A stretch of DNA of 64,000 nucleotides, from positions 124,001 to 188,000 of IMG/VR virus record IMGVR_UViG_3300017917_002466; one strand, given 5' to 3'. Positions 15,067 through 50,301 of the stretch are shown here, piece after piece (position 1 is the first letter of the stretch; every line of letters begins with the position of its first letter). The notes under the pieces were generated by a model. The model had not been told where the DNA came from. It did not search any database and was given only the letters and a program-made list of their open reading frames with translations. A program made the translations under genes and the position numbers.

Positions 15067-15178
15067 TGTTCTTTCTCCCTTCCCTAATAATATACATCAC
15101 GGACGAAGGATTGTCAAGCCCTAAAAAAATGAATATGCCGCCAGTTTGGAATCCTTTCAGTTAAAGTTATCTTCTTTC

Positions 15179-15502: not shown

Positions 15503-15552
15503 TGTTTTCCTCTCTTTCTATACAGATAATATACATCAAGGAAATTATTTTG

Positions 15553-17418: not shown

Positions 17419-17622
17419 TCAATCCTCCTTAAAAAACTTTTTTGTTTTATTCCTCGGCAATTCGTTCCAATTTCTTACCGCTATTTTATGATCAAATTCG
17501 TCTGCGTGTTCGTCATTACGACCATTATTTTGTTTGGGACCAGTCATCAAACACACATTACATTCGACATAAACATAACGATCATTCAGATCAGTACTAC
17601 CACAATTAGGACAAGGTTTCAT
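17419..17622 (-). CDS. Lar-like restriction alleviation zinc ribbon protein
   Basis: MKPCPNCGS, VECNVC, A...WN pattern. Confidence 0.55.
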   Translation of the reverse strand: MKPCPNCGSTDLNDRYVYVECNVCLMTGPKQNNGRNDEHADEFDHKIAVRNWNELPRNKTKKFFKED

Positions 17623-17632
17623 TTGATTTCTC

Positions 17633-17811
17633 CTAGCTGTTATGATTATAATAACAATCATCAGAACAACAAGTTTGATTATTAGATTCTGGCTTAAAAT
17701 CACAACCACACCAAAGACAATTACGAACTTCATTCATCCATGCATCAGGACAACCATGTTCATGACAAAGAACACCATTAATAACGAGAGTTTCACATGA
17801 TCGACACATAG
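17633..17811 (-). CDS. Cys-rich protein, paralog of 9575..9796
   Basis: MCRSCETLVINGVLCHEHGCPDAW. Confidence 0.65.
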
Positions 17812-17869
17812 ATTGTTTTATCCTTTCTGTATATCTAATATACATCAGAATGATTATTATGTCAAGCCC

Positions 17870-18590
17870 TATTTTCTTTTATTTGGGGCTTGACAATATT
17901 AAGCCCGTGTTGTATATTATAATCATAGGGTGACGAAAGTCATCAGAAGAGGCCAAGGGCGAGGGTAGCCCGCCCAGCCGGAGACGGGTTTAAGCGCTTA
18001 AACAAAGGCCCTCAAAAATCCTCCCTCACCAAACCCCTATTTAAACGCTTCAAATTCCATCGTAGATAGGAGCCTTTGTTGCCCCTATAAGGCCCCCTGC
18101 TACAGGATCAAACCTAGTGTCTATTTAAGCGGTTTGAATCAATTCCCATTGACACAATGTGGCGAGGCTGTGACACATCAAAATTGGGCTTAAGCGGTTA
18201 GCCTATTTAAACGATTAACAAAAAAAGAAAGGGCTTGACAAACACTCTGCTATGATGTATATTAATAGTACTGGAAGCCTCCAGCGAACGGGGAGATCGC
18301 TCTTTGATTTAACCGCTTAAATGAATGCTTAAGTTTCTTCGCCTTTGTCAATCCTTTTAGTCAATCTTCTCTGTCAATTTATCCCCTCTGAAACAGCTAA
18401 ATATAATCTCTCATTATCCCCTATGAAAACAAGCCCTATTATCCCCTCTGAAATATCCCCCAAAGGCTCATTGACAATTACCTTCTAATATGTTATCTTG
18501 TATTATAGGTGGTGAAAGAGCCTATCCGAGCGTTTGCGGGCTTATGGGGGCTCTAGTACCCACGTATTTAAGCCCTTAAAAAGGAGCCTT
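17870..18590. promoter_or_regulatory. divergent non-coding control region with plus-strand promoters, palindromic sites and direct repeats
   Basis: TTGACA promoters at about 17890, 18235, 18471; TTTAANCGNTTAAA-like sites; three ttatcccct[ca]tgaaa repeats at about 18379-18454. Confidence 0.65.
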
Positions 18591-18595
18591 GACAG

Positions 18596-18865
18596 ATGAT
18601 GAAACTAGTCCATTCCTTCTTGCGATTCATATGGAGTAACCTCATAGGCATTCTCAGTTGGCTATGGTTGATATGGGTGACTGCAAGCCTATTGGATATG
18701 GGAAGCAGGCTTGACAAATTAGAGAAGCAAAATGGGCTTATCTTAGAATGGATATTGATGCAGGGGCAAGATGTTGGAAAGCTTAAACAGGCTCCGAATG
18801 AATCCGATACATCACAAGTCCCATATGGAAATTCGGATAGATGGAAAGGCTTAAATTGGCTTTAA
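18596..18865 (+). CDS. membrane-anchored hypothetical protein
   Basis: N-terminal hydrophobic helix followed by short coiled coil. Confidence 0.55.
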   Translation: MMKLVHSFLRFIWSNLIGILSWLWLIWVTASLLDMGSRLDKLEKQNGLILEWILMQGQDVGKLKQAPNESDTSQVPYGNSDRWKGLNWL

Positions 18866-19032
18866 GCATATGGAAATGTGGATGGATGGAAAGAGTTTGG
18901 GAGGCTTGATTAAGCCCACAACGAGAGAGTGAATAGGCCCTATCTTTATTAAAGTGGGAGATTGTGGGATAAAGTGGGCCTTCGTGGGGAAATCTGGATA
19001 GAAAATCAATAGCTTACGCGGGAGCCTTCCTT

Positions 19033-22000
19033 ATGGAAAGATGGAGAATTAGACCTGATGATTGTCATTTTGATTCTGTTTGCCCCTTTTATGATTCAAA
19101 GAAAAATAGATGTACTAATATCAAAATGGCCTTTAGAAAGAAGTGTATTGTTTGGGAAGCCCTTCCTGTATCAAACTTTGATATATTGATAGACCTTGGA
19201 GTTAATCGTGATGATGAATGGTCAAGGGAAGAAGTTTTACAATGGAGAGAGTTTGGAAATCTGGATGGATTTTCTGGGAGTTAAGCCTATTATGGAAAGA
19301 TGGATTATCAGTAAAACATATTCGGAATACATTAAAGATGTTATGGACATTGTGGTTCGTATGAATAAGTATAAAGATGTTGCGACTAATTTATTTGGCA
19401 ACTGTCTTAATGGGCCTTTTTTGTTAGATAGGGTTGAGAATGGTTTGTTTAAGTCTAATGCTATGGTTTCTGTTGACAAGGTAAAAGATAATGAAAAGTT
19501 TAACTTTGTAATGTATGTTGAGTCTGGAAATCTGGATGGATAATCTATATGAGAAGATTTTATACTTTAAAGAAACACTGGGACAAGGATTGTTTAAAAG
19601 CCTTTGAGTCTCGTATGACGGATATATTAGAATACATTGATTACTATAAAAGAAGTAATATATGGTTAGATTCTGATATTAAAAGCATTGAGAATTGTAG
19701 AGAAGATGTTACTATAATTTACAATGGATTAAGAACGAAAGGAACTATATAAGAAGGTGGGAAGGTAACAAAGTATGATAGAAGATTGAACGGAAACCTT
19801 TATGAAGCAGAATTTCGGATGGATGTTTTGGTATGGAAGTCTTCATTTGGGCAAATGGGGAGTACTGATACTGATTTTGAATTCTTCTTTAACTACTTGG
19901 AGAATATGAATGATAAGATGGCATATTAAAAAGATCAAAGCCAAGTGGTGGAAGATAACCTTCCCTTGGTTAGATAAGATAACTAAGATAAGAGTTGACA
20001 GAAGGTTAGATGTAATGGTAGCTATTAATTTCTTGAAAGGTTGTCGTCACGAAGGTGGTATTCCTTGCGTTGAAAGAATGTATGTTGAAGGTAAAGGATA
20101 CACAAGCCTCTATGAAAGAAAGAACTATCTTGATTGTTTGGAGAATGGAGTTTGACTTATGCAAAGATGGAAGATTGATAGAGTATTTTTCTCTGAGGAA
20201 GAAGCCGAAGGTATGCTTGGTGAATGGCTTGATGTTCGTCTTCACTTAGACTATTTGGAAAATGATTGGCACGGCCAGAAGCTTCTTGAAACGCTTGAGG
20301 AAGATCAAGTATGATAAAATATAAAGGGTTTAAAAACGACCACGATAAAGCAAGAAAAGAAGTCCTTGAAAAAATGAAGGATATGATTGAACTAAGGGAA
20401 TGGTGTGTTAGACATAATTCTCTTTCTTGTGACTTAGATGATTTTAATAATTTCCTTGAGATAATTGAAAAAGGTGGCAATGATAATGTATAAGTGGAGA
20501 ATTCTTAAATTCAAGACAAGAAAGGATGCTGAGTTTATACTTGAACAAAGGTTAGATGTTTTGAAGTATGTTCCGACAGTAATTAACAAGGAACCATATT
20601 TTGAAATGCTTGAGTATGATGAAGAGCTAATAGAAGAAGAGACATTTAACAAAGACAGGTCTTTACTGTAGATACATAATAAGGTGAAGCTAATATGAAA
20701 AGATGGAAGACAAGAGACAAGAAGCCAGAAACAGTAGAACTCTATATGGACATATTAAAGGCTGAAGAGTTCTTCAAATTCTTGGATAATGAAAGTATAT
20801 TTGACAAAAAGCAAAGATACCCTGATAACTTTCAAAGATACATTATCAAGTCCGAGTTCGGTAACAATGAAGGTAAATATGTATAGATGGAAAGTTCAAA
20901 GGCTAAGTAGGAACAAAGAGATGCTTGAAAGGCGAATGGATGCCTTAGTAGCAAAAGAATATATTCTACATAACAAGTTTGAAGAAAGTATTATTGCTTG
21001 GAGTGGTGGCCCTCATCTCATTAAAAAGTTTGAACATTATTTGACGTTTCTTGAGAGTGGAATAATGGAGAAATAAAGTTAGCTAAATGTATGTAACCCA
21101 TTGGAGGACTTATGATAAGATGGGTTTCAAAAAAGGTCAAAACAGTTCCAGCAACAGACTGGATTACAATGGAGAAAACTGAGCAAGAATTATTGGATGA
21201 ATTGGCGTATCAGATGGATATTCAAATAGTTAAGCAGCTAATGTCAAAAGAAGGTGGGTGTTTTGTCAGGGTGTTTTGATGACTGATATAGAAGAATACC
21301 TTGAATGTTTGGAGAATTCAGTATGAGAAGGTGGAGTTTCAAAAAGAACGGGAACAATGAAGAGTTTGATTCTTTTAGACTTATGACTGATATTTTAGTT
21401 TATTTGAATAATATGAAAGAGATAACAGCCAAATCTGTTAGTAATCCAGAAACCCTGAAATTCTATATCCAACATCAAACGGATAAAATAATTGCTTCAA
21501 TTGAAGAAGGAGATGGCTCAAATGGTTAGATGGCATATTGTCAAAGGAAGAAAAGAAGAACCCGAACTTACCAAGAGATTCACCGATGTTCAGTATGAAA
21601 TTGATTGTTGGAAGTCTCTTAAACTAACCGCGGGATGGGCTGACGAAAAAGGAATTCAAGAAGCAGTTAAAAATACTTTACATAGTCTTGAGTTTGGAAG
21701 GTAGACAAATGGTAAAATGGAGATTCCATAAACTTTGTTTAGATGCTGATGAGTTGCACGAAGAATGTCTTGACATAATAACACGACGAAGAAATTTGTT
21801 TAGAAGATATGAGGATGAAGAAATGGATTGTTTAATACAAGAAGATTGGAAGTCCGAACTAAGGTCAATAGAATATGATTAAGTGGAGCGCAAACGGTTC
21901 AAATGGTCAAAGAAGAAAGAGGATAATAGCCACATTATCTGATTTAAAGATATGTGAAGCTTGCATTAATGAATATGATACTTTTCAAAATTACTTAGAA

Positions 22001-22723
22001 ATTCTTGAAGATGGTCAAGACGATGGGAAGTTTCCTGCTCAAATTCAAAATAAAATTATTGTAGGTATTGAAAAATTAAATTGGACTGATTTTAACTTTT
22101 CTATGTAAAGATTTTATATGATACGTTGGAAAATCTATAAATCGAAAAACAAGAGTTCTATAAGAGCCAGAAACAATATGATGAACTTTTATAATTGGAG
22201 TAACGCTATTAAACAAGTCGGGAAAAAAATTAATGCAGATTATTCTAAACATATTAGCGAAAGATTAACATTAATTGAGTCAGAAGAAGTTTATATAATT
22301 AAAAGGAATATTTAAGCTTGCATAACTTATTGGAAAATATTATATTATGATAAGGAAATGGAGGGTTAATAAAGGAAAGTCAGTTCAGGCTAGCTTTACT
22401 ATTTCTAAGCTAGGCCATCAAGGATTTATTTCACCAAACCCAAAAGACTTTGAAAAGTACTGTGACATAATGAGTGATGAATTAAAGTTCAGAAAACTAT
22501 TTACTGATCCAAATACTATTAAAAGATACGAAGAATTTTTGGAGAATGACTGATGCAAAGGTGGATAGTTCCAAAACAGATTCGTAAGTGGGAAGCTGTC
22601 ATTGAGGAAAGGGATCGTTGTATGGATGTTTTGAAAGATATTGAATATTACTCAGGAATTTGTTTGGTTAGAGTAGACCCTTTAAAAGTTAGAATGGCTG
22701 AACTATCTGTATGGGAAAACTAA
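19033..22723 (+). other. tandem run of about 17 small ORFs, about 15 starting M-x-[RK]-W or a close variant
   Basis: MERWRI, MERWII, MIRWHI, MQRWKI, MYKWRI, MKRWKT, MYRWKV, MIRWVS, MRRWSF, MVRWHI, MVKWRF, MIKWSA, MIRWKI, MIRKWRV, MQRWIV. Confidence 0.8.
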
Positions 22724-22995
22724 TTGTATTTAATTATGTAAAGTTATGATAAAATTTATGTACGAACAAGTTTCTATGTTTACTTTTTGGTTTGAAATTC
22801 GTGGAAATTATGGTGAATTACTTTATCCAAAATCGACAATATCTGCACCTGCAATGTCTATAATAAAAGAAATTTTGACAGACTATTTGTTTGCCAGAGA
22901 AATTAATAATAATACTTCTAAGATATTTAATAATGAAAGTTTAAGCCCTGAAGAACAAATAGATTTATTAACAATAATAATTCACAAACTAGAGG

Positions 22996-23604
22996 ATGCT
23001 GACAATGACAAATAATGATAAAACTTTTATTGGTTGGGCGATAAATGAATGTATTAAAGAAGGTGTTAGTGTTCATTTAGTTCCTAAACAATCTATTAAA
23101 TTTGATAACGAAGATTGTGCTGGTTGTTTTAGTGATGGAGACAGAGAACTTTATGTAGCCACTAAAACTTCATTTAAAAATTTCTTTCCAACGTTTCTTC
23201 ACGAATTTTGTCACTTTAAACAATGGCAAACAAAAGAACCATCATATATGAAAGTCTGCAATAATCCTGAAGTTGATGCTGATATGTGGGAATGGATCGA
23301 GGGAAAAGATATTCCGATGAAAAGAGTTAGAAAGTCAATTCACTCTTATAGATTAATGGAGTTGAACTGTGAGAAGATGGCCTTAAATTATATAAAGAAT
23401 TTTGATTTATCTATTAACAAAGAGCATTATATTGTAGCCGCAAATGTCTATGTGTTGTTCTATGGGGTGATTGAGGAAACAAGAAAGTGGTTCAAGTACT
23501 CTCCTTATGATGATAGACTCTTTGATTTGGTACCAAAGAATTTTGTAAGGAGTTTCAGACTTCCGAAGGGGTTTAAAAAGAGGGCGTTGTCAGTGTGTTA
23601 TTGA
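22996..23604 (+). CDS. putative zincin-like metalloprotein
   Basis: FLHEFCH HExxH motif with downstream E. Confidence 0.6.
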   Translation: MLTMTNNDKTFIGWAINECIKEGVSVHLVPKQSIKFDNEDCAGCFSDGDRELYVATKTSFKNFFPTFLHEFCHFKQWQTKEPSYMKVCNNPEVDADMWEWIEGKDIPMKRVRKSIHSYRLMELNCEKMALNYIKNFDLSINKEHYIVAANVYVLFYGVIEETRKWFKYSPYDDRLFDLVPKNFVRSFRLPKGFKKRALSVCY

Positions 23605-25632: not shown

Positions 25633-26481
25633 CTAACGGGCATTTCGCACAACAGTGTCCTGCGCGGGGCTTCTTAGCGCATGGATGCGCTCTTCTGCTA
25701 TCCGGCAGTATTTCTCTTCCTTCTCAATTCCGATGTAATTCCGGCCAGTATTAATACAAGCGATTGCAGTAGTACCGGAACCAATGAACGGGTCTAAAAT
25801 TGTATCACCACAAAAAGAATAATAAGAAATCGCTTTTGTAGCCAACTCTAATGGGAACGGAGCTGGATGTCTATTACGCTCCGGGTTGATTTTCCATACA
25901 TTTGTTCTTTCGTAACCATCCAGCACTTTGGATTTTTTTATTATCTCTTGTGAATGAGAACGAATTGATTTGTCCAGTAAGCACCCCGGCTTTGAAAACA
26001 CCAGTATATATTCTGTAATATTAAATGTTTTGTACGCAACTGGTCTACGATGGTGCGAAAATTTGATTGCTCGACTTGATGCACCATCTGGCTTTACCCA
26101 TATAATGTCGTCTAAGAATGTCCATTTTTTTGAAAGCATAGAACAAACATCAAACGGTATTGGTATTCGTTTTGATTCTGTGCTTCTTTTTTTCCTCGCT
26201 TCAATAACGCATGACAAGTTCAGCACAAATATTCCCGCCGGTTTTATCTTTGTATGTGCCGTATTAAAAACTGTGTCTAAAAAAGATAGATACGAGGCAT
26301 ACGATTCGTATTTTGAATAACACCTTGCATTATAATACGGCGGTGATGTTAAAATCATATCCACGCTCTCGTCTGGTATAGTCTGCATGACTTCGAGGCA
26401 GTCCCCGCATGTTACGGTATTTGTCTTCGGCGCAGGACGCGCCGTGTCTTGCCCCGCGCCTATAATTTCAGAATTTGCCAT
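25633..26481 (-). CDS. DNA methyltransferase (N4-C/N6-A, beta-type motif order), last unit of array 2
   Basis: GDCLE, ILTSPPY, HPAPFP, ILDPFIGSGTT, GIE; ATG 5 nt after GTTAGGT. Confidence 0.9.
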   Translation of the reverse strand: MANSEIIGAGQDTARPAPKTNTVTCGDCLEVMQTIPDESVDMILTSPPYYNARCYSKYESYASYLSFLDTVFNTAHTKIKPAGIFVLNLSCVIEARKKRSTESKRIPIPFDVCSMLSKKWTFLDDIIWVKPDGASSRAIKFSHHRRPVAYKTFNITEYILVFSKPGCLLDKSIRSHSQEIIKKSKVLDGYERTNVWKINPERNRHPAPFPLELATKAISYYSFCGDTILDPFIGSGTTAIACINTGRNYIGIEKEEKYCRIAEERIHALRSPAQDTVVRNAR

Positions 26482-26516
26482 ATTGCACCTAACGGTTCGG
26501 CAAACGTAAGCCGTGC

Positions 26517-26738
26517 CTACGAATGCGTGCGACAAGGATATTTTACGTGAACGCACTGACGGTCGTAATTCTCCACACAGCACGTTGTTTGGCATGGCTT
26601 GCTTTGCCTGTTGTTTGTCTGTTGAGCGAGTACAGCGGATTTCAGAGTTTGCCAATGCAACCGCCCCTTAGTTTGCAAGTGCTCCGATAACTCATCAAAC
26701 CATTGAACCGCATCAGATATTTCGTTACTCATTGGCAA
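26517..26738 (-). CDS. cassette ORF with attC-encoded Cys-rich tail
   Basis: One ORF per cassette; AGGAG RBS. Confidence 0.55.
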   Translation of the reverse strand: MPMSNEISDAVQWFDELSEHLQTKGRLHWQTLKSAVLAQQTNNRQSKPCQTTCCVENYDRQCVHVKYPCRTHS

Positions 26739-26780
26739 ACTCCTATCAGTAAATTTAAGAGCGAAATTGCAAACAACGTA

Positions 26781-27095
26781 TCACGCACCCGCCCGTTGTT
26801 TGTCCGTTATCCACTTACAGCACCGAGGGCACCAAGCATCTATACCGCTATATGGATACACTGGTGCCTTACCACATGTAGGACAAATTACGGGCTGCGT
26901 GTGTTGTGGGACCGTGGGCAATTCTACCGCAATCTCTGCGCGGCGATCTTTTACCCATTGCTCCATTTCGATTTGATCATTACTCAATACCACCAACGCA
27001 TCATTAGGGATTTTCCCACCATGACGAAAAGGTGCCGTGACCTTGTTGACTCGGCAAAGGAACATCTCAAGCCTGTGTATGTCTTCGACGCGCAT
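26781..27095 (-). CDS. cassette ORF with attC-encoded zinc ribbon
   Basis: CPTCGK...CPRC lies inside attC 26771-26909. Confidence 0.6.
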   Translation of the reverse strand: MRVEDIHRLEMFLCRVNKVTAPFRHGGKIPNDALVVLSNDQIEMEQWVKDRRAEIAVELPTVPQHTQPVICPTCGKAPVYPYSGIDAWCPRCCKWITDKQRAGA

Positions 27096-27721
27096 AATAA
27101 TTCCTTTTGAATTGCCCATGTACCACAACGTTTAGCGCACGGGTGATAGTTTGCCCGTGGCTCGACAAAGCCCACACTTTACCATACCAGTACCAGGATC
27201 GTCGGATAAATACTCGCCACTACCCATACACGTAGGGCAAATTTTACCCTGCGCTTGTTGGTTGATGCGGAGGGAAGCCACCTCAGCCTCCAGCGTGGCG
27301 ATAGCCCGTTCAAGAGACAAAAACCGATTCATAACAAATGATGGATCAGAGAAATCAATTTCGTTTACCACGCCACACCTCCATGTATAAAAAGCTGACC
27401 GAAGTTTCAACCAACGTCTGCCCTATGCTGACGTTTCTGTTTCAGAAATGTGGGAGTCATCGACCGAACAGCATTGGGCTGTTGTTTGCTGTGCGCTCGC
27501 TTCCACAAAACCTGCGGTTTGCGGAGTATCGAGAGGGCACCAATTTGGTATTTCAAAAGTAACATTGATAACAGACCTACCGCCATATAGAGGATGGTTG
27601 CAAATAAATCCACTCTGACTGTAGCACAAGGGACATTCGTTACAGCAACTAATTTTGATTACACGCATGAGCAAACCGCCTATCTATTCTCAAAAGAGCG
27701 CATTGCAACCAACGGTATCGG

Positions 27722-27958
27722 CTACGCCTGAAGTTTGCCCGTACCGTGACAACGCCAACAGTCCTTACCATTGTTATAATTATTGGTAGAACCAGACCCA
27801 GCAGGGAAACAGTCAGGGCAAATTTTAGGCTGGCCGTGTTGGTGGATGTGACGCTTGCTTCCACCAATTTTGCGGCGGGTCTTAAACTGATCCTCGCCAT
27901 AGTGGCCGGTTATGTAATTATCAAGTTCCTGACTCATGCGCTTATCGTTGCCGAACAT
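27722..27958 (-). CDS. cassette ORF with DnaJ-like Cys-rich tail
   Basis: ICPDC..GSG...CWRCHGTGK; GGAGG RBS. Confidence 0.6.
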   Translation of the reverse strand: MFGNDKRMSQELDNYITGHYGEDQFKTRRKIGGSKRHIHQHGQPKICPDCFPAGSGSTNNYNNGKDCWRCHGTGKLQA

Positions 27959-28590
27959 ATTTCCTCCCGCCGCTTACCAGTTAAAAGCAAGCGGCATTTA
28001 CACCAAGTTTGGCGCATTCGCACGAAGTTACGCCGTCTTATCGCACCAACAAGTAGAACACTGCTTGTGAGCAACATCAAACGGGCATATATCCAAGCCC
28101 CATTTACAAGAAGGCGTAATTTTGTGCTGCGCCTGTTGGTGGATGTGCCGCGTTTCTTCCGCAATGTCAGGCTGGCAATCTTCCAGCATGATAGGGCAAG
28201 AACCGGCGTGATCCACTATTTCATCTTGAGTGCCAAAGAAGCCGCAATATTTACATTTGCCAGCCATATAATAAACCTTTCTTGAAACGCGGCATTTACA
28301 CCAACGTTTGCTCAACCGCACGATAGTTGTCGCAATCGATCTACCACTGCTGTAACATAAGACACATAAACCTTGTGCTCAACAAACTCTTTGTAAAGAC
28401 TATCGGCTATTGCGGCAATTTCGTGCTTGAGCTGTTGTACGTCTGTGGAAGGAGCGGCTTCCTCAGCTTTAAGTGCTCGCATCACGGCAGGGCAACGGTC
28501 TACGTTTATACCCATACCGCTACACGGCAAAATGAATGACTTGTTATCCACGCGAGCACCTCCTAAATCGTAAAGAGCGACTGGAATTGC

Positions 28591-28722
28591 GTACAACGGT
28601 TCAGCAACGTGCGCCGTGCCTACAGGGCTTCACGGCAATATGGACACCACACAAACCCAGTATGGGCCTTGCCAAGACGAAGCCACTCGTGAAATTGGCA
28701 TGGCGTACTTGCCGTGTTGTGC
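28591..28722 (-). repeat. attC-like site, near-identical to 29438-29570
   Basis: About 105 bp internal identity with 2 visible substitutions; encodes NTASTPCQ[FY]HEWLRLGK.HTGFVWCPYCREAL. Confidence 0.85.
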
Positions 28723-28844
28723 GATGAATTTGTTGACTCCCTAATGTAAGCGCGAATTGCTTCTAACGCGGTAAAATCTTTTGAATATTTACACATTCTC
28801 TCTACTTGCAAAACGGCTTCGTGTATATCCATTCGCGCCTCCAA
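28620..28844 (-). CDS. cassette ORF (body family shared with 31415..31663)
   Basis: ALE.IRA...ESTNSSHN shared; tail shared with 29468 cassette. Confidence 0.65.
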   Translation of the reverse strand: MEARMDIHEAVLQVERMCKYSKDFTALEAIRAYIRESTNSSHNTASTPCQFHEWLRLGKAHTGFVWCPYCREAL

Positions 28845-28895
28845 TATGGTTCAACAAACTTTTGCACAACGGTTCGGCAAACGGGCGAAGTTGGT

Positions 28896-29063
28896 TTACC
28901 TCGACACGGAGGGCTGTTCTACGCCAATTTCGCCCTTTGCCTGTTGTGCGATGTTGTTTTTAATTACCTTAATTTCAGCGGCGATTTCTCGTAACCGAAG
29001 ATTATTAGCTACAACAAAGCACCACAACGATAAATAAGCCAGAAAGACAAAAAACCATTTCAT
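28896..29063 (-). CDS. cassette-borne 55 aa membrane protein
   Basis: MKWFFVFLAYLSLWCFVV... Confidence 0.55.
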   Translation of the reverse strand: MKWFFVFLAYLSLWCFVVANNLRLREIAAEIKVIKNNIAQQAKGEIGVEQPSVSR

Positions 29064-29109
29064 AATCGCCGCCTATAAATCAAAGATTAAAAACCATTTC
29101 GCCTAACGT

Positions 29110-29406
29110 CTACCGCATCGCACGAAGTTGCCGCGCCCAAACCCACAACCTACGATAAACCCCTGACGGTAGATTATTGTTATTGTCTACAAAGGCTTCC
29201 ATTTCTGCGGCAATTTTGTGCTGCGGTTGTTGCACGGGGCGCTTCGCCCGAACCGTTCGGCCCGTTTCCAAATTATCCAGCGCGGTGCGGACTGCTATTG
29301 CCCCGCTGTGGCCGAGAGAATAATTGACAACGGCAACCGCTTTGCCGTTACGACATACCTCAAACGCATAGCCAGTATCTTCTATCTCATATTTGGCACC
29401 GCGCAT
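29110..29406 (-). CDS. cassette ORF
   Basis: AGGA RBS; tail ..WARQLRA shared with 30599 cassette. Confidence 0.6.
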   Translation of the reverse strand: MRGAKYEIEDTGYAFEVCRNGKAVAVVNYSLGHSGAIAVRTALDNLETGRTVRAKRPVQQPQHKIAAEMEAFVDNNNNLPSGVYRRLWVWARQLRAMR

Positions 29407-29437
29407 ATTAACATCCTATCTTTAAGGGCCGAATGGC

Positions 29438-29570
29438 GTGCAACGTTCTCGGCAATGTACGCCGTGCCTACAGGGCTTCACGGCAATATGGACACCACAC
29501 AAACCCAGTATGGTCCTTGCCAAGACGAAGCCACTCGTGATATTGGCATGGCGTACTTGCCGTGTTAGGC
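29438..29570 (-). repeat. attC-like site, near-identical to 28591-28722
   Basis: GCCTAAC...GTTGCAC. Confidence 0.85.
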
Positions 29571-29701
29571 GATGTAGAAAGCGACTCCTTAACGTCCTCA
29601 AATTTGACAAATTCACCGTCGTCGCACTCCTCCATCCGAGCATGCGTGCCATACATATCGCTCGTGACCTTATAATCGTACCGTGTCAAATTTACATCCA
29701 T
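29468..29701 (-). CDS. cassette ORF (NLTRY...G..VKF.D.KE body family)
   Basis: Body related to 32217..32474 and 31696..31962. Confidence 0.6.
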   Translation of the reverse strand: MDVNLTRYDYKVTSDMYGTHARMEECDDGEFVKFEDVKESLSTSPNTASTPCQYHEWLRLGKDHTGFVWCPYCREAL

Positions 29702-30598
29702 ATATCGCTCTCGCTTTCTATTTCGCATAACGTCTGCCACACGGTTGATCGTTACGGCCTACCTTGCCAATCACCAGATTCACGTTCAGGAACATCATAT
29801 CGCCGTTTAGATAAATCTCCATAATATGAATAGGCCGTAATGTCAACCTGTGGCTGTTGTACGTCTGTGGAAGGAGCGGATTCTTTAGTTAATGCGGTGC
29901 AGCCATGACCGACACCCTGAACACCTTGCCACTCCCACCGAGCTTGTATATAGTGACGACAATCTTTGAACATTTGCACCGCCTTATAGATCGTTTAGAG
30001 CGACTGGAATAGCGTACAACGTGTGCCAAAGTATGAAGGTGTGAAACAATTTGCGAAGCGAACATACTTTGGCTGTTGTGTGTTGGTTTTCGCTCCACAA
30101 TATTAAAAAGCAATTTGGCGATTGTAACGAGGCCAACTCAACCACCCTCGTATCCCATCGGGCGTCCCCTTTGGTGGTCTACATAGCCGTGGACGGCTTA
30201 GCCAAATTGCCTATAAATTCAAAGAGCGAAAACTTACACACAACGTATACGCTATTGTGAAGTAACTATGTTATTTAGGCGCTCCTCTAACTGTGAAATA
30301 AGCGACAATGCCTGTGGATACGACTCCATTGCTGACGGAACTGAATCCCGTAGAAACTTGAGCGCCGCCACAATAGCGTTGTTGTGCGAAGGTTTTAACG
30401 CCTCCTCACAAAACATTTTTATGCGACCCCACGCCAGTTGTTCAGACGAAGACCCTTTTGCATTAACAAGTGCGCTAACAGATGATAGTTCATTTTCAAG
30501 CATAAAAACTCCTAAATAAAAAGCGTTAAAACTTTTGCACAACGGGATCAGGCATTGCCCGACAGTTTGCGCGGTGCTTCACAAGCGATACAAACGCT

Positions 30599-30895
30599 TC
30601 ACAAAGCGCGAAGTTGCCGCGCCCATTTACTTAACTGCTCTGCACTTGGTACGCCACCGATATTTGCTATGCGCACACCATCCTCAAGCTCAGTGGCAAT
30701 TTGGGCGATAGCCGCGCTTTGTGTGTTGGTTGATGTGGAAGGAATGCCCACCTTATTTTTCTTTCGGCGGGTAATCTTTCTCCACCACGAATGAACAACG
30801 GAACAGATAATAGCAACCAATCCTATTGCCAACGCTACGCCAAGGAACACCAGCCCAAACACATCATGAAACGTCCATACGAAAATAGAACCCAT
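30599..30895 (-). CDS. cassette ORF, membrane protein
   Basis: AGGAG RBS; long hydrophobic segment. Confidence 0.6.
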   Translation of the reverse strand: MGSIFVWTFHDVFGLVFLGVALAIGLVAIICSVVHSWWRKITRRKKNKVGIPSTSTNTQSAAIAQIATELEDGVRIANIGGVPSAEQLSKWARQLRAL

Positions 30896-30954
30896 TTTTT
30901 TCTCCTTACCCGCCGAACTATTAATTCAAAAGCGGGATTTATTTTGCACAACGG

Positions 30955-31131
30955 TCAGCGCACAGCCGATGCGGTACGCTTACCATTTTTGCTACCCCGT
31001 TTCGGCTTGCGCTTGTTGTGTGCTGTTCGGCGCGACTCTAATCGCTCCCAGGCGGCCAGCTCCGCATCACCACGGGCCTCCGCCGCACCCATCACAGCAT
31101 CAAAATCATCAGGACCATAATCGTTTTTCAT
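30955..31131 (-). CDS. cassette ORF of 58 aa; basic tail shared with 6456..6761
   Basis: HNKRKPKRGSKNGKRTASAVR vs ANKRKPKRGKRSTGRTASAVR. Confidence 0.6.
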   Translation of the reverse strand: MKNDYGPDDFDAVMGAAEARGDAELAAWERLESRRTAHNKRKPKRGSKNGKRTASAVR

Positions 31132-31414
31132 TTGGCCGCCTTTACAATAACGCTCTCACGCCGAATGGCATCACAACGTTCACCGCACGCCGGATGCGGT
31201 ACTCCGTTTACGGCTGCGGGTGTTGTGCGAAGTGCGGCCCGCTTCCGCAAGTATTGGCGCGACTTCGCTACGGTGCGCCCACTGACCTTCCTTGTCAAAC
31301 ACAAACCTTGCAATTACTTTTCCACAGCAAATCTCAGTTTTCAATGAATACCACTGCAGTTTTTTTCGCGCCATTATAACCTCCAAAAGGGCCGCATTTT
31401 GCACAACGTCTGCG

Positions 31415-31663
31415 CTACTGGTGCTGTGCGCATACTAAGCAGGCATGTTTTTTACACTTTCGACTAGTAATTACACCACAGTCGTAACCAGCTCCGATGT
31501 GCGCTTCGCATGGCACCATAGCGCTGTTGTGCGATGAATTTGTTGACTCCGCCAGTGCTGCGCGAATGGTTTCCAATGCACATTTACAATCTGGACACTG
31601 GTGTTGATCCACGACTATTTGAAAATGAGCCAAGGCTTTCTTAATTTCCATTCGCGCCTCCAA
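31415..31663 (-). CDS. cassette ORF
   Basis: 5' end near-identical to that of the 28620 cassette. Confidence 0.6.
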   Translation of the reverse strand: MEARMEIKKALAHFQIVVDQHQCPDCKCALETIRAALAESTNSSHNSAMVPCEAHIGAGYDCGVITSRKCKKHACLVCAQHQ

Positions 31664-31695
31664 TATGGTTCAGCAAATTTTTCGCACAACGTATG

Positions 31696-31962
31696 CTAAA
31701 CGGCTGATGCCTTGCGCTGGATAAAATAGTCGTGAACATCTGGATACCACACACATTTACGACATTTATATAAATCCTCGTAATCGCTACCATAGTACGT
31801 TTCACATTCCTTACAGCGCAAGGTTTCAGCCTTTAGCGGTTGGTTGCCTGTTTGTGAAAGCTCCTTAGTGTCGGCAAATTTTAAATATACTCCGTCACCA
31901 CCTTGATGTATGTCGCAATCACAATCGCAACTATTAAACACAAATGTTCTGAAATTTGCCAT
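31696..31962 (-). CDS. cassette ORF with zinc-binding tail
   Basis: AAGGAG RBS; CKEC...CRKC inside attC. Confidence 0.6.
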   Translation of the reverse strand: MANFRTFVFNSCDCDCDIHQGGDGVYLKFADTKELSQTGNQPLKAETLRCKECETYYGSDYEDLYKCRKCVWYPDVHDYFIQRKASAV

Positions 31963-32216
31963 ATAATATCGCTCCTTTCACAAATTGCAACCAACGGTTG
32001 CCAAAGTATGAAGTTTACGTTTCGTAAATTTGCGAAGCGAACATACTTTGGCTGTTGTGTGTTGGTTTTCGCTTCACAATAATGTAAGGCGCGGGGCTGC
32101 ATAGGCTGAGTAGTGACCACCGCAGCATATATCTCCACCGAAAGTACGGTGAACCCTCAATTGTCACCGCGCCATATAAATTCCAAAGAGCGAAAACTTT
32201 CACACAACGGTTCGCA

Positions 32217-32474
32217 CTACTGCTGTTCGTGCCAATCGGTTCGTTTGCCAGTAAACCTACTGCACGCATGGCACGTGGGGCTGACACAACCACCTATGTT
32301 ACGTTTGCAAGATTGGCATGACAGCATAGCGCTGTTGTGCGATGAATTTAGAAGCTCCTTAATGTCGTCAAATTTAACCCAAGCCCCCTCATCGGATGCA
32401 ACCATTTGATGAAAATTATCCATAGTTTTAGTACGGTTAAACCACTCTAAATTATAACGGGTTAAATTTGCCAT
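32217..32474 (-). CDS. cassette ORF with zinc-binding tail
   Basis: 5' UTR identical to the 31696 cassette, different attC. Confidence 0.6.
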   Translation of the reverse strand: MANLTRYNLEWFNRTKTMDNFHQMVASDEGAWVKFDDIKELLNSSHNSAMLSCQSCKRNIGGCVSPTCHACSRFTGKRTDWHEQQ

Positions 32475-32868
32475 ATAATATCGCTCCTTTCACAAATTGC
32501 AACCAACGTTTACGCAACGGGTGAAGTCGCCACAACTTTTAGATTATGACAATACCCTTGCTTTAATGTACAATGATCCGATAAACACTTTAAACTACAC
32601 TCGATTTCACCCTTGCGTTGTTGGTTGTCTGTAAAATTTTCTACCTTAGATGCAAGAGCGGCACACCATACGAGATGGGTATACTGCTCCTTATCTAACG
32701 TAGATTTACAACCAATACTATCAAACCATTCTCTACAAGTGCCGCTCATATAAACTCCAAAGAAAATTTTATTGCAACCAACGTTTGACAAATGGTGAAG
32801 TCGTGTACTCACGATTTAGGCTTTTCGTTACCATTTGTTTGTTGTAAGATGTTTATGCCACTTCCTTA

Positions 32869-33165
32869 TTATCCGTTGGCGCATCTTTGTTTTTTGATAT
32901 AGTCTAAAAGTGTAACCTGTTCTTTTTCTGGTAACTGTTCAATCACTTTTTTATTGAAAAAATATTCATCCGTAAAACCACCAACAAAATCTAACCATTT
33001 TCCTGAAATCTTTGGTAATGGTAACTCGGTGCCCCGATAAGATGCAGACATAAATATCTCTGCTGGTACGCCGTTTAATTTCCGGTAAAGTGTTCCCCCA
33101 CCACTTTTCTGATGTTCCTCTGGATACGGTGGGTTCCAAACGCCTGTGAATTTTAGTTTTTGCAT
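32869..33165 (-). CDS. cassette ORF ending before its attC
   Basis: AGGAG RBS; 98 aa. Confidence 0.65.
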   Translation of the reverse strand: MQKLKFTGVWNPPYPEEHQKSGGGTLYRKLNGVPAEIFMSASYRGTELPLPKISGKWLDFVGGFTDEYFFNKKVIEQLPEKEQVTLLDYIKKQRCANG

Positions 33166-33496
33166 TTTTTCTCCTGCGCCAACATCTGAATATCAGAGTG
33201 GCATAAATTTCTTACAACGTTCACCGCACAGCCGATGAATTGCGCTGCCAGTTACAAGAAAGATTTTTTACACATACATCACCAAACCCTGCTTGATAAC
33301 TACACATTCCACTATATGCACAAAGCAATTTTTCGGCTTGCGGTTGTTGTGGGATGTGGAGCGCAGGTTCCTTAGTGTCCTGCGCGGCACGCTTCGCCCA
33401 AAAATCAATCCATTCATCACGAGTAATAGCTGGTTTAGATGGCATAATGTGACTTTCTATGAGCCGCGCCTATCATATAGACCTGCGCGGAATTTA

Positions 33497-33560
33497 CCAC
33501 AACGTCTGCGCAACTGCGCGTAGTTGGGCCTTGACAATTACGACGCTTGCGCTGTTGGTG
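33497..33560 (-). repeat. attC-like site of first cassette of array 2
   Basis: CACCAAC agcgcaa...ttgcgcagac GTTGTGG; R'' matches the cassette start GTTGGTG. Confidence 0.85.
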
Positions 33561-33795
33561 GATGTGCCTGCCGACTCCGCTTGCTCTGCGGGCGAACCGG
33601 CGTCAACAACAGCGCGAGGAAATGATCGGCGGCGCGATTGCCTATAGTGTGCCGTTTGGCCGATGAATCACGGCTACCCTCCCAACGAGCACAGTCGTAA
33701 TACGCCATGGCGATGTTGGCCTGATAGGCACGGTACAGCCCCTTGTCGCGCCGTAACGCCCTTGTGAATACCTTGAACGCCTCTTGAAACTCCAC
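33538..33795 (-). CDS. first cassette ORF of array 2, paralog of 6456..6761
   Basis: AGGAGG RBS; GTG start. Confidence 0.7.
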   Translation of the reverse strand: MEFQEAFKVFTRALRRDKGLYRAYQANIAMAYYDCARWEGSRDSSAKRHTIGNRAADHFLALLLTPVRPQSKRSRQAHPPTAQAS

Positions 33796-33851
33796 AGGCG
33801 CCTCCTTATTGTTCGCCCGCCTACAATCGCGTTCTCGGCAGGCATTTACAC

Positions 33852-33891
33852 CAACTAGTTAAATGATGTCATTCCCTTGTCTAACTCTTTG
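33852..33891 (-). other. attI-like recombination site, copy 2
   Basis: CAAAGAGTTAGACAAGGGAATGACATCATTTAACTAGTTG, identical to 7641-7680. Confidence 0.8.
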
Positions 33892-34095
33892 ATTTTCATA
33901 AAATTTTTTAAACTTATTGCTCAATTTATCTAATGGATAACCGTCTTGTATTAAAGCCCTTATTACAGCATACCGAATATATTTAGAACGAGTAATTTTT
34001 AGCTTTTCTCCTTGATGCAAACAACCAGTTGCTAAAACTGGTTCTAAATATATCTTATAGTCACTTCTTATCTTATCAGACCATTTTGCTTTCAT
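33859..34095 (-). CDS. small basic protein, possible ribbon-helix-helix DNA-binding protein, overlapping the attI-like site
   Basis: ITRSKYIRYAV motif; promoter TTGACA-N17-TATATT at 34102-34130. Confidence 0.5.
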   Translation of the reverse strand: MKAKWSDKIRSDYKIYLEPVLATGCLHQGEKLKITRSKYIRYAVIRALIQDGYPLDKLSNKFKKFYENQRVRQGNDII

Positions 34096-34368
34096 ATTTT
34101 AAATATATATTATTTTAATGAATTTGTCAACCCCTCTGAACAATTATATCATCAGCCAACATTGCAATACCTTTGTTATCGCTTCTTCTATTTAAAATTG
34201 CGGTCTTGAAATCTCTTGTCATTAACTTCTTTGCGACTTCGTATTCTTCATCAGTCAAATTGAATGTAGATGGATATACCCTCATATTTCGGTTGATCGC
34301 AGACATATCCCAAACTTCAAGAACCTTTGTCTTGCTTGTCAGTTTAAAGTAAGGCTGAATACGTTCCA

Positions 34369-39663: not shown

Positions 39664-40152
39664 CTAATCCTTCTTATAAGCCCTAAAAATACAACCCAAG
39701 TATTGTCTTACCTCTTGGAAAATCTTTGTTGACTCTTCTGGGTCTTTTCCGCGATTTCCGGCAACATTCAATATTACAATATTGTTTTTATCAATCCAAT
39801 CTGTGACATCAAAAATAAATGGTAAATCTTTTAAATCACATTCAAATGATAACTTATTATAAAATTGAATAGCTTTTTTAGTACAGATTGTTCCAGGTGA
39901 ATTAAAATCGTTTGCTATAAGAAGAGTTGCATCACTATCTTTTACATTACAGTATGTTCTTGGTGAATAGTTTGGAGAAGTATGCTCTATCAATCCGAGT
40001 TTGGCAAGAGATGGTCTGGGTCCATATACTGTTTTATATCCAAGAGGAGCAGTACCACCAGTAATTAACCCACAATCTCTAGCAGCAGCCAACGCAGCTA
40101 AATCAACTCCATATTGTCCACCACTGTAAATTGTTGTTAAAGTTTTTTTCAT
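39664..40152 (-). CDS. SLOG-family putative molybdenum carrier (YpsA-like) protein
   Basis: SGGQYGVD.AAL, RT..NVKDSDATL, LNVAGNR. Confidence 0.8.
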   Translation of the reverse strand: MKKTLTTIYSGGQYGVDLAALAAARDCGLITGGTAPLGYKTVYGPRPSLAKLGLIEHTSPNYSPRTYCNVKDSDATLLIANDFNSPGTICTKKAIQFYNKLSFECDLKDLPFIFDVTDWIDKNNIVILNVAGNRGKDPEESTKIFQEVRQYLGCIFRAYKKD

Positions 40153-40573
40153 ATGATTAATATACCATTTTGTTGTCAATCTGTCAATAGAAAACTATAA
40201 ACACCTAAAGATGATATTAAAATTAAACTTCAAAACAATCTTTTACCAATCTCATATAAATCTACCGAAAAACGCCGATGCATCAACCTAACAGTAAAGT
40301 ACTCTCTTAAAGTATGTCTGGCATTTTCATCTTCAAAAAAACTGTTCGTTGAAGGTCTGTCGCCGTGTTCTAAGAGTAAAGGATGTTTAATGTACAATAC
40401 ACACCATTTCAACTCAGCAGACTTTGTTACAATCATATCAATATTTGATATTATTTTTGGGTTGAGTCCACTTATCCATATCTTTTCAGAAAATATCAAA
40501 GTATCAAAGTCAACTCCGAACTGAATAGAATAAAATCCTTTCTTGGTGCTTCCGCGATCTATTATCAGTTTCA

Positions 40574-42565: not shown

Positions 42566-43456
42566 TCAATTACAAGCTATTATAGAAGGTTTATTAGCCA
42601 TTTCTTCTCCGACTCTCTTGTATTGGTCAAGAAATTGAACTCCGTCAAGCTTATCAATAGCCTTTGGAATAGCAATGTCATAGTAGCTCATTGAAATCTT
42701 TTTCTTTGAAGAATTACACATTGCCTGTAATCCATAGACTTGTTCTTGACGAACTTGTTCTCTGGCTAGTCCACCATCATCAATTTCAAGGAAAGAAAGA
42801 ATCTGACGAACAAATTTATACTTTTTAGCTTTATTGAATAAAATATTTTCATCAGAAAATCCACAACCAATAATATCAAAATGCCAATTTTCATTTGGCC
42901 AAAGAATGAAAGCATCAACAAGACCATAAGCAATAGGAATATTGGCTACTCCCATTCCACCATCCATCCATACGGATTTATTTTGTTCGTCAATCAATGT
43001 TCCGAAATAGAAAGGAGCAGCAAAAGACTTACATGTCGAAGTAACAAGATATTCTTGTCCATCCTTTTGTTCCCAAGACTTAAAGAAGTGATTTCTCTTG
43101 TCACAAAGATTAACAGAAGTTATTTGAACTTTTGTCAAACAATCAGCCATTTTTATCATTCCAATTTCTTTGACAAAAATTTCAATGAAGTGTTTTCTAT
43201 TATACATTGGAATTGGTGGAAGCCATTGTCTTTCAAATATCTTCTTGACCATACTTGGATAAATAGCTTCAAGATAATCCATTGTAATCTTTCCAGAAGC
43301 TATCATTGCGGCATTGATAGCCCCAACAGAGCTTCCTACAATCAAGTCATAATATTTGGAAAGAGGACCAACTTCAGCTTCTTTCTTTTTCAAAACTTGG
43401 GCTTGTGCGTAGCCTTTTACACCACCACCGCTTAGAATCATTATTCGTTTAGACAT
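42566..43456 (-). CDS. patatin-like phospholipase
   Basis: SGGGVKG, GSSVG, DGG motifs. Confidence 0.9.
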   Translation of the reverse strand: MSKRIMILSGGGVKGYAQAQVLKKKEAEVGPLSKYYDLIVGSSVGAINAAMIASGKITMDYLEAIYPSMVKKIFERQWLPPIPMYNRKHFIEIFVKEIGMIKMADCLTKVQITSVNLCDKRNHFFKSWEQKDGQEYLVTSTCKSFAAPFYFGTLIDEQNKSVWMDGGMGVANIPIAYGLVDAFILWPNENWHFDIIGCGFSDENILFNKAKKYKFVRQILSFLEIDDGGLAREQVRQEQVYGLQAMCNSSKKKISMSYYDIAIPKAIDKLDGVQFLDQYKRVGEEMANKPSIIACN

Positions 43457-49945: not shown

Positions 49946-49946
49946 A

Positions 49947-50300: not shown

Positions 50301-50301
50301 A

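Follow-up and report, generated by a model that had tools for sequence, protein, structure and literature searches.

Paired ends of gene cassettes in a giant phage, next to integron-type hairpins

Integrons carry promoter-less small genes in one orientation behind a promoter, each gene joined to an attC site, an imperfect hairpin with R'' (...AAC) and R' (GTT...) boxes, an unpaired spacer, an L stem and extra-helical bases on one arm. The folded bottom strand is recombined by the integrase IntI, and the first 6–7 nt of a cassette complement the R'' of its own attC, the footprint of crossover at G|TT. IntI is a tyrosine recombinase with a specific insertion in its catalytic domain, which is essential for integron function (PMC8138268), whereas the genesis of cassettes is unexplained (PMC5371416). 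Clusters of attC sites without integrase (CALINs) are reported in virulent phages (Qi et al. 2023, PMC9892861). In T4-type phages, repeated promoter/stem-loop motifs (PeSLs), each a local stem-loop plus an early promoter with the same sequence at every copy, flank small early genes in variable regions and are thought to drive modular shuffling; PeSL-mediated shuffling is documented in these phages (PMC2839356, PMC4122927). In the pdif modules of Acinetobacter plasmids, neighboring modules share an asymmetric 28-bp double-stranded site of the form 11-6-11, set in inverted orientation and attributed to XerC/XerD. XerCD also integrates filamentous phages at an attachment site that exists only when a single strand folds into a long imperfect hairpin with mismatches in defined places, one site per phage genome. 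Finally, MITE-like elements such as Correia elements and REPINs are units of 150–170 nt bounded by inverted repeats of about 22–26 nt.

We analyzed a 64,000-nt stretch (the window) of a 254-kb giant phage genome, which contains two arrays of tiny genes, all on the minus strand. Array 2 (about 26480–33855) holds about 25 cassettes in which gene bodies (X) alternate with attC-like hairpins (Y); its GC content is 44–48% in a phage of 31–38% GC. Array 1 (5624–7644) holds about 8 cassettes of the same kind. In 15 of 24 bodies of array 2, and in at least 3 of 7 in array 1, the body begins with GTT plus 4 variable nt (the 7-nt R box), a 4-nt spacer and a 10–14 nt arm, and ends with the reverse complement of that sequence. 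A preliminary description of the window had reported that cassette starts and ends carry such inverted repeats, with a different arm in each cassette family and a few cassettes without one. This observation is correct: the six arm pairs it listed, in X4, X9, X21, X20, X0 and one array-1 body, are all present.

Body X4 (28135–28305) reads GTTGGTG-gatg-TGCCGCGTTTC ... GAAACGCGGCA-ttta-CACCAAC, with R boxes matching 7/7 and an arm of 11 nt. R matches 6/7 in X9 (29564–29731; arm TAGAAAGCGA, 10 nt) and 7/7 in X21 (32841–33218, 378 nt; arm TTTATGCCAC(T), 11 nt), in X20 (32620–32782; arm TAAAATTTTCT, 11 nt, with spacers of 5 vs 4 nt) and in X0 (26903–27129; arm TGGGCAATTC, 10 nt). The array-1 body at 7480–7644 has the arm GTTTTGTTGA and belongs to the same family as X6 and X16, with compensated arm differences. 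X23 (33554–33855), the promoter-proximal cassette of array 2, has R 7/7 and the arm TGCCTGCCGA; it is homologous to the array-1 body 6516–6812 (GTTGGCC ... GGCCAAC), which is joined to a different hairpin and whose orthologue in L092 (L numbers denote other contigs of the comparison) carries the compensatory pair GTTAGCC ... GGCTAAC. Two cassettes lack an ORF: X11 (30075–30244) shares its shell ends with X18 (32054–32208), which has an unrelated interior, and with L088:7056–7265. Six of the 24 cassettes lack arms: X5 (28434–28597; R 7/7), 27257–27415, 29226–29444, 29856–30020, 30725–30952 and 32334–32507.

The pairing is not a chance property of the sequence. In a scan of the whole window, all 15 pairs with at least 16/22 complementarity between a GTTG... 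start and a ...CAAC end within 600 nt lie in the two arrays. A stricter scan (R at least 6/7 plus an arm run of at least 8) gives 17 hits inside the arrays and 1 outside, against 1.35 expected in block-shuffled sequence. In array 2, an arm run of at least 8 nt occurs in 15/24 cassettes but in only 4/552 non-cognate start/end pairs, a comparison that had been proposed beforehand as a test of the observation. Position by position over 50 modules from several contigs, positions 1–3 are invariant, positions 4–7 and 12–22 covary (arm matches 7.22 of 11 against 3.25 ± 0.24 in 2000 permutations, maximum 4.16), positions 10–11, the last two of the conserved spacer, are never paired, and nothing pairs beyond position 22. 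Across all contigs, strict hits number 75, with 61 distinct arm 9-mers and the same two spacer positions unpaired, although a few single-hit loci and the L089 repeat are probably chance.

DNA folds of the 24 hairpins of array 2 show a 5-bp CAACG/TGTTG stem, a 3-nt bulge, a 6-bp stem and a 1-nt bulge, with the bulges always on the same arm, as in attC. The hairpins are 58–195 nt long. In Y1 (27123–27263, 141 nt), the 3-nt bulge lies on the + strand 5' side and is followed by a 6-bp L stem; on the minus strand Y1 encodes ...INQQAQGKICPTCMGSG...KCGLCRATGK, a zinc-ribbon tail. The genes start in the body and read through the hairpin, which often encodes a CxxC...CxxC tail, to stop at its far base; by contrast, the 98-aa ORF of X21 ends inside the body. 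Y15 (31171–31228, 58 nt), the shortest complete attC-like site, is translated, and its stop codon lies 3 nt from the box. The minus-strand orientation and this read-through were missed in the preliminary description.

Several features are those of integron cassettes. The R box matches 7/7 across the body in 16/24 cassettes but across the hairpin in only 3/24; this complementarity by itself is the classical integron signature, also missed at first, and only the spacer plus arm is new. As in integrons, small promoter-less genes lie in one orientation behind a putative promoter, and DNA methyltransferases occur as cargo in both. In Vibrio (14 cassettes) and Shewanella (16 cassettes), however, none of 30 canonical cassettes has arms, and the R complementarity extends outward by only 2–5 nt, so that the feature is not routine in the ordinary cassettes examined. 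The genes of the window lie on the strand equivalent to the attC bottom strand and read through the hairpin, unlike in integrons. Compared with PeSLs, the stems here are long-range, cassette-specific and covarying, and promoter or terminator motifs are not enriched: inside and around the array there are 16 promoter-like sites against 13.6 expected and 7 terminator-like sites against 9.2 expected. As in pdif, the modules here are bounded by the same asymmetric, presumed recombination site in inverted orientation, neighboring modules share a site and a Xer-family recombinase is implicated. Compared with pdif, whose modules have neither hairpins nor module-specific arms, the conserved junction is about 12 nt (YWTC-NNN-CAAC-R), is flanked on both sides by module-specific stems and has no dyad of its own; a dyad arises only by folding. 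Compared with the single attachment sites of filamentous phages, used for chromosomal integration, this is an array of gene cassettes. MITE-like units resemble the bodies in their uniform size (15/24 bodies are 155–175 nt), but transposon ends are the same in all copies and are flanked by target duplications, whereas here the ends differ between units and covary, there is no duplication, and the units abut hairpins in strict alternation.

The same layout is found in about 25 other viral contigs and one MAG contig, and its distribution is almost entirely viral: one pattern search found 4 true arrays besides the window's own contig in viral contigs, against 1 in 185,579 species genomes. The cultured Polaribacter phage P12002L is among the carriers. 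Its gp53 and gp54 carry arms of 12–18 nt and lie next to a near-identical second copy of the attC2 site, which is reported to be recombined by IntI1 (PMC9892861); two copies of one site diverge right after GTTA. In P12002L, the genes have the opposite orientation relative to the site polarity.

No recombinase of any kind, including an integron integrase, was found in the 64-kb window, in most related loci, or in the 48,000 of 48,689 bases of P12002L that were searched. In seven of seven independent contigs, however, a distinct Xer-like tyrosine recombinase of 279–297 aa, with PF00589 and, in the closest members, PF13495, is co-oriented with an array whose first box starts about 15–45 nt after its stop codon; armed bodies were confirmed downstream in five of them, while the other two contigs end too soon. 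This recombinase lacks the 35–45 aa insertion present in Vibrio IntIA and two other IntI proteins, and both this lack and its co-orientation with the cassettes differ from integrons. Seven recombinases at 24–28% identity have no such array.

We favor, with moderate confidence, the view that the region is an orphan array of a phage-borne, integron-like cassette system, each unit consisting of an attC-like hairpin and a body whose two ends form a cassette-specific inverted repeat. The analysis itself establishes the repeat, its covariation, its strand asymmetry, its conservation across phages, its absence from the IntI arrays examined and the gene-neighborhood link to the recombinase; that recombination uses single-stranded DNA, that this recombinase carries it out, what the arms contribute, and any attI or promoter function at the array heads are inferences. 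The arms most likely act in the folded single-stranded DNA of the non-coding strand, where they would lengthen the R-box helix of the recombination site outward into a roughly 22–25 bp duplex carrying a fixed mismatch. The non-coding strand folds better in 38/49 bodies (10 the other way) and in 22/24 hairpins because the fixed mismatches are T.T/G.T on that strand and A.A/A.C on the mRNA strand, although the energy difference is modest (mean 1.3 kcal/mol). In an excised circle the arms would give a dumbbell, and circles built in silico fold in this way, with the R helix forming in 18/23 and the arms in 17/23. In the linear array, the two ends of one cassette would pair with each other and take the R boxes away from the neighboring hairpins; in a linear fold of a Y+X single strand containing X11, the R boxes pair across the body (z = -7), a competition overlooked in the preliminary description. 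The likely enzyme is the Xer-like tyrosine recombinase that is encoded directly upstream of such arrays in related phages; the window has no copy, so its arrays would be served in trans, served from elsewhere in the genome, or be relics. Against this reading, no recombinase was found in the window, in most related loci or in the searched part of P12002L, and no recombination product, whether a circle junction or an empty versus filled site, was observed. Similarity between paralogous modules also ends inside bodies, not only at boxes, so ordinary homologous recombination also shapes the arrays. The model does not explain why the genes lie on the strand corresponding to the attC bottom strand and are translated through the hairpin, nor do all cassettes have arms.

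The interpretation offered in the preliminary description is only partly supported. Its dumbbell geometry with a central R''/R' helix holds in the predicted folds, the cassette-specific complementarity and its absence from two canonical integron arrays hold, and the association with a recombinase clade different from IntI fits its suggestion of a distinct recombination mechanism; a link to cassette genesis, which it also raised, remains conjecture. Its proposal that the body is a second attC-like substrate is not supported: in the body hairpin the conserved GTT/AAC triplet, where integron crossover occurs, sits at the open end of the stem, far from the arm, whereas in an attC it abuts the spacer and the L box, and the body stem is symmetric, with none of the one-sided bulges of the Y hairpins. 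We therefore consider it doubtful that bodies and hairpins are exchanged independently, each excised between its own inverted boxes, even though they do assort. The same hairpin occurs with different bodies, as with Y6 (28591–28722), which is 88% identical to Y9 (29438–29570) but joined to an unrelated body, the similarity ending at GTT, and with a Y14-type tail on the array-1 relative of X23; the same body family occurs with different hairpins (X6/X16, X9/X17/X19). The attC sites flanking one P12002L gene were called 'divergent' (PMC9892861), meaning boxes in inverted orientation on both sides of a body. Yet sites in inverted orientation give inversion, not excision, no inverted module was seen, and the recombinant X19 has its breakpoint inside the arm, not at the box.

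Somewhat less unlikely, but still tentative, is that no dedicated recombinase is needed, and that hairpins and short conserved junction motifs promote copy-choice or short-homology recombination during phage replication, as proposed for PeSLs, the paired arms bringing together the direct repeats GTTG...GATG of neighboring cassettes and so stimulating cassette-precise deletion and duplication. Most arrays, including those of the window and of the P12002L genome (48,000 of its 48,689 bases searched), have no recombinase gene nearby, junction patches of 35–80 nt are the most conserved parts of the cassettes, and collapsed hairpins, 12 nt at 6219–6230 and just 'TA' at 33856, look like slippage products. 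Breakpoints also occur inside bodies. This view does not explain the invariant unpaired dinucleotide and conserved spacer, the one-sided bulges or the adjacency of one recombinase clade to arrays, and the array lacks the motif enrichment of PeSLs. It is improbable that the stems act in RNA, as long-range helices that bracket each cistron of a polycistronic early transcript for RNase III-type processing, stability or translational control. The arrays are promoter-less operons behind putative early-type promoters, one arm lies in the 5' untranslated region just before the ribosome-binding site, and a stem of about 22 bp with an internal loop suits RNase III, but the antisense strand folds better, cleavage of both strands of the stem would cut the reading frame at the body/hairpin junction, and the P12002L genes are oppositely oriented. 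Least likely, the repeats are unselected, decaying relics of how each cassette was first made, for example by duplication-inversion or fold-back synthesis. The six armless cassettes, which have lost or never had arms, would fit, but compensatory changes keep the pairing in orthologues and within families, the same two spacer positions are unpaired in all contigs, and pairing persists in divergent methyltransferase cassettes. The window's N6/N4 DNA methyltransferase gene (25633–26488, minus strand), at the distal end of array 2, has the upstream box TTGC-ACCTAAC (26478–26488) with an arm that contains the start codon (MANSEI); the same gene is a complete armed cassette in L058, L059, L072 and L117, and in the methyltransferase cassettes the arm, which overlaps the start codon, is still matched at the far end in proteins only 33–37% identical to that of the window.

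At the array heads, a 41-nt flank (33856–33896) next to array 2 is identical to 7645–7685 next to array 1. It reads TA followed by a degenerate box, GTTAAAT-GATG, and its TGAC-N12-GTTG motif resembles the junctions downstream of the recombinase genes in other contigs, where a conserved palindrome, GCGTCA-N-TGACGC, lies about 12 nt before the first box. Promoter-like sites lie upstream of both arrays; that of array 2, TTGACA-17-TATATT (34102–34130, minus strand), precedes a 78-aa gene and the array. The window also holds a separate promoter-plus-leader repeat family of the general PeSL type.

The window belongs to a 253,664-bp viral contig, IMGVR_UViG_3300017917_002466 (window position p = contig p + 124000), and encodes typical large-phage functions, including Thg1-like and RNA-repair enzymes, an NAD+ salvage cluster, an HNH/NUMOD3 endonuclease and DNA methyltransferases. 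Auxiliary gene sets at 55458-62675, 48596-52108, 42566-43456 and 39664-40179 comprise NAD+ salvage (NAPRTase, NUDIX, NMNAT-like, NAD synthase and isochorismatase-type), a Thg1-like guanylyltransferase with an RlaP nucleotidyltransferase and an R2K ATP-grasp protein, a patatin-like phospholipase, and a cpYpsA SLOG protein. A 10-kb stretch at 12957-22996 lacks any ORF of 150 aa or more, and the GC skew switches to positive at about 18-24 kb, so gene orientation changes there. The phage has no close relative among GenBank phages: near-identity searches with the array and with a 15-kb phage segment returned nothing. Two stretches stand out by composition, at 44-48% GC against 31-38% for most of the rest of the window: array 2 (about 26480-33855) and array 1 (5624-7644). 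Rfam gave no match in the window, either at gathering thresholds or, over the array, at E <= 1.

On the + strand, every unit reads as a box ...NNNCAAC followed by G, a hairpin module (Y), a box GTTGNNN followed by GATG or a variant, an arm, a gene body (X), the complementary arm, TTTY or TTRC, and the next ...CAAC box. The Y modules are 58-195 nt long and, as single-stranded DNA, are predicted to fold into a 5-bp CAACG/TGTTG stem, a 3-nt bulge, a 6-bp stem, a 1-nt bulge and a further stem, with all the extra bases on the same arm, the hallmark layout of an integron attC site. The genes are on the minus strand, which would correspond to the attC bottom strand by analogy with a canonical Vibrio array and with textbook attC structure. 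In 21 of 24 cassettes, an ORF starts in X behind a GGAG-type ribosome site and runs through the box, which is read in all three frames; the box conservation therefore lies in the DNA, and the idea that it reflects a conserved peptide was rejected. The ORF ends inside Y, in 13-14 cases within 3-9 nt of the far box, and many Y modules thus encode CxxC...CxxC tails. Pfam and PHROGs searches with the cassette proteins gave only a weak zinc-finger match, for cassette 1. Array 1 has the same organization. In array 2, body lengths cluster tightly at 155-175 nt (15 of 24) even for unrelated proteins, and body-plus-hairpin units cluster at about 207-227 or 280-313 nt, suggesting a size constraint. In a related array, a 130-nt module in the hairpin position (L118:9006-9139, in a contig that also carries a recombinase gene described below) has its own start codon and a 30-aa hydrophobic ORF; hairpin modules can therefore hold independent mini-genes.

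Both arrays sit behind early-type promoter motifs and share an identical 41-nt head flank, which among viral contigs occurs only in this contig and is found nowhere in the metagenome collection. No promoter or terminator motifs are enriched inside the arrays. A repeat family of about 70 nt, with at least 14 copies at 4495-17900 (e.g., 4501-4581, 9507-9579, 13465-13541 and 17807-17884; also 7690-7745), reads on the minus strand as TTGACA-17-TATATT plus a conserved leader and ribosome site and is probably a set of early promoters; one copy sits just upstream of array 1. Collapsed hairpins are also present: a 12-nt remnant lies between two boxes in array 1 (6219-6230), and at both array heads (33856-33857 and 7645-7646) only TA separates the last CAAC from a degenerate GTTAAAT-GATG box, which is the 3' end of the 78-aa gene upstream of array 2.

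The preliminary description reported that each gene body is bounded by a cassette-specific inverted repeat, and this observation is confirmed: every arm pair that it listed is present. All 15 pairs in the 64-kb window with at least 16/22 complementarity between a GTTG start and a CAAC end lie in the arrays, and a stricter scan gives 17 hits in the arrays and 1 elsewhere, against 1.35 expected in shuffled sequence. Within array 2, cognate ends share an arm run of at least 8 nt in 15/24 cassettes, against 4/552 non-cognate pairs. Over 50 modules from several contigs, positions 1-3 are invariant, positions 4-7 and 12-22 vary but match the cognate partner, positions 8-9 pair and covary, positions 10-11 never pair, and nothing pairs beyond position 22; arm matches are 7.22 of 11, against 3.25 +/- 0.24 in permutations. 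Family relationships among cassettes reduce the effective sample, yet arms differ in at least 13 cassette families of array 2, and there are 61 distinct arm 9-mers overall. Homologues of the protein encoded by body X23 of array 2 are few, and their contexts added only one informative relative, L092. The orthologue there, from another metagenome (80% identical), of the array-1 body at 6516-6812 carries a clean compensatory pair: GTTGGCC/GGCCAAC has become GTTAGCC/GGCTAAC. When circularized in silico, the cassettes fold in most cases as the dumbbell that had been predicted.

Whether such pairing is routine in ordinary cassettes, a point set beforehand as a test, was examined in two canonical IntI-linked arrays, a Vibrio chromosomal-integron segment carried by phage Va_90-11-286_p16 and the Shewanella M16-3 integron plus CALIN; it is not. 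In all 30 cassettes, the start is 7/7 complementary to the box before the cassette's own attC, the classical footprint of crossover at G|TT, but the complementarity continues outward for only 2-5 nt, and there is no spacer-plus-arm. In the Vibrio array (L091:28992-41405), the R'/R'' complementarity is 9-11 bp rather than 7 and extends 2-4 nt outward in all 14 cassettes, about the length of one recombinase binding arm. The window shows the same classical footprint, 7/7 across the body in 16/24 cassettes against 3/24 across the hairpin. The new element is therefore the conserved spacer with its fixed mismatch, plus the arm.

The same architecture, always with different arms, occurs in about 25 other viral contigs of 4-264 kb and 37-56% GC and in one contig binned as a Chitinivibrionales MAG that carries phage-like genes. 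Bodies range from 140 nt to 2.5 kb, and their cargo includes N6/N4 and C5 DNA methyltransferases and radical-SAM proteins. In the methyltransferase cassettes, the arm contains the start codon and is still matched at the far end in proteins only 33-37% identical to the window's. In the cultured Polaribacter phage P12002L, gp53 and gp54 are bounded by the R box, a 4/5-nt spacer and arms of 12-18 nt, and beside them lies a twin of the site called P12002L_attC2, which was shown to be recombined by IntI1 (Qi et al., PMC9892861); the two copies diverge immediately after GTTA, and that paper does not mention the arms. An initial scan hit around P12002L gp35 proved to be ordinary similarity between two neighboring attC sites, not an outer arm. 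One search pattern found 4 true arrays besides the window's own contig in viral contigs, but only 1 in 185,579 bacterial and archaeal species genomes. The system is therefore essentially viral, and the idea that the cassettes came from a host chromosomal integron was set aside because the motif is almost absent from these genomes yet common in viral contigs.

A candidate enzyme is encoded beside some of these arrays. In the contig L117, a 279-aa tyrosine recombinase gene (PF00589 + PF13495) ends 27 nt before the first box of an array; NCBIfam places it nearest the XerA, XerC and IntI models, all below their cutoffs. Its close homologues (43-66% identity) form a small clade, and in every context for which DNA was available, seven independent contigs (L117/118, L119, L121, L123, L125, L126 and L128), the gene is co-oriented with an array and immediately upstream of it. 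The stop codon is usually followed by a small palindrome (GCGTCA-N-TGACGC in four of the seven, weaker or absent in the others), then about 12 A-rich nt, and then the first GTTNNNN box with its spacer and arm. Armed bodies were confirmed downstream in five of the seven; L125 and L120 end too soon. More distant recombinases (24-28% identity) have no arrays nearby. The clade keeps the catalytic residues but lacks the 35-45 aa insertion that defines integron integrases and that the literature holds to be essential for integron function (PMC8138268). No member was found in the window, a search that leaves the remaining 190 kb of the contig uncovered, and an integrase sought beside the arrays of five related loci, L006, L058, L059, L072 and L088, was not found.

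The fixed unpaired positions are T.T and G.T on the non-coding strand but A.A and A.C on the mRNA strand, and a further G.T versus A.C sits on the other side of the R helix. The non-coding strand folds better in 38/49 bodies (10 the other way) and in 22/24 hairpins. This argues for a DNA-level rather than an mRNA-level structure and would supply a built-in strand mark. When a hairpin-plus-body segment is folded in silico as a linear single strand, the R boxes pair across the body and leave the hairpin closed only by its L stem (z = -7); in a circle, the same R helix serves both sides, giving the dumbbell. Most likely, the recombination site of this system has three parts: the arm helix, the fixed mismatch and R helix, and the bulged hairpin. 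In this view, the arms tie the two ends of one cassette together, which would stabilize the recombinogenic fold in a free cassette and, in the array, would either mask the R boxes or juxtapose the two crossover points. Whereas the repeats, their covariation, their distribution and the neighborhood of the recombinase genes are observed in sequence, this scheme, including recombination itself, is inference; no product of recombination was seen.

The interpretation offered in the preliminary description is thus supported only in part. The dumbbell geometry holds in the predicted folds, but the proposal that the body is a second attC-like substrate is not supported: the GTT/AAC triplet of the body hairpin lies at the open end of the stem rather than next to the spacer, and the stem lacks one-sided bulges. 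It is true that bodies and hairpins assort independently, as the same hairpin occurs with different bodies and the reverse, and a single fixed cassette phase (body plus left hairpin, or body plus right hairpin) could not be established because both kinds of linkage are broken somewhere. However, some breakpoints lie inside bodies or arms; body X19 of array 2, for example, is a recombinant whose arms no longer match. Ordinary homologous exchange therefore contributes as well. A diverged copy of the methyltransferase 5' end (arm plus MANSEI start) at 26630-26660, inside the neighboring cassette, looks like the trace of an earlier rearrangement.

Alternatively, the arrays could be shaped by recombinase-independent, hairpin-guided copy-choice in the manner of PeSLs, the stems could serve RNA processing or translational control, each module could be excised independently, or the repeats could be unselected relics of cassette genesis. 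The conserved mismatch, the compensatory changes and the recombinase adjacency count against all of these possibilities, but none is excluded.

Integrons are the textbook case of recombination sites recognized by shape rather than sequence, and their integrase is thought to need a special insertion to read that shape. Here, the same cassette logic appears in lytic-type and giant phages with two differences, the site architecture (an outward helix with a fixed mismatch) and a recombinase clade that lacks the insertion. If the link holds, it gives a second, independent solution to structure-specific recombination, offers a mechanism for the fast turnover of early and anti-restriction genes in phages, and provides a natural system in which recombination sites lie inside reading frames. 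It also bears on the open question of how cassettes are made and, practically, warns that attC callers will report such phage arrays as ordinary CALINs.

A bolder possibility, which the evidence does not rule out but which remains doubtful, is that the arrays represent a previously undescribed, phage-specific analogue of the integron. A small Xer-like recombinase without the IntI insertion would act on the three-part folded sites (arm helix, fixed mismatch, R helix, then the bulged hairpin), and the translated hairpins would supply C-terminal zinc-ribbon tails. Exchange at the shared boxes would therefore shuffle whole genes (methyltransferases and other anti-restriction cargo) between phages and also the N- and C-terminal halves of small early proteins.

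ORF-less cassette bodies at 30075-30244 and 32054-32208, and in the related loci L088:7056-7265 and L118:8866-9005, share about 35-nt ends (arm plus a CACAATA.../...ATAAATTCAAAGAG shell), while their interiors are unrelated and are themselves palindromic. They have no Rfam match and could be small RNAs, promoters or empty landing pads; in L118, one is the first cassette after the recombinase.
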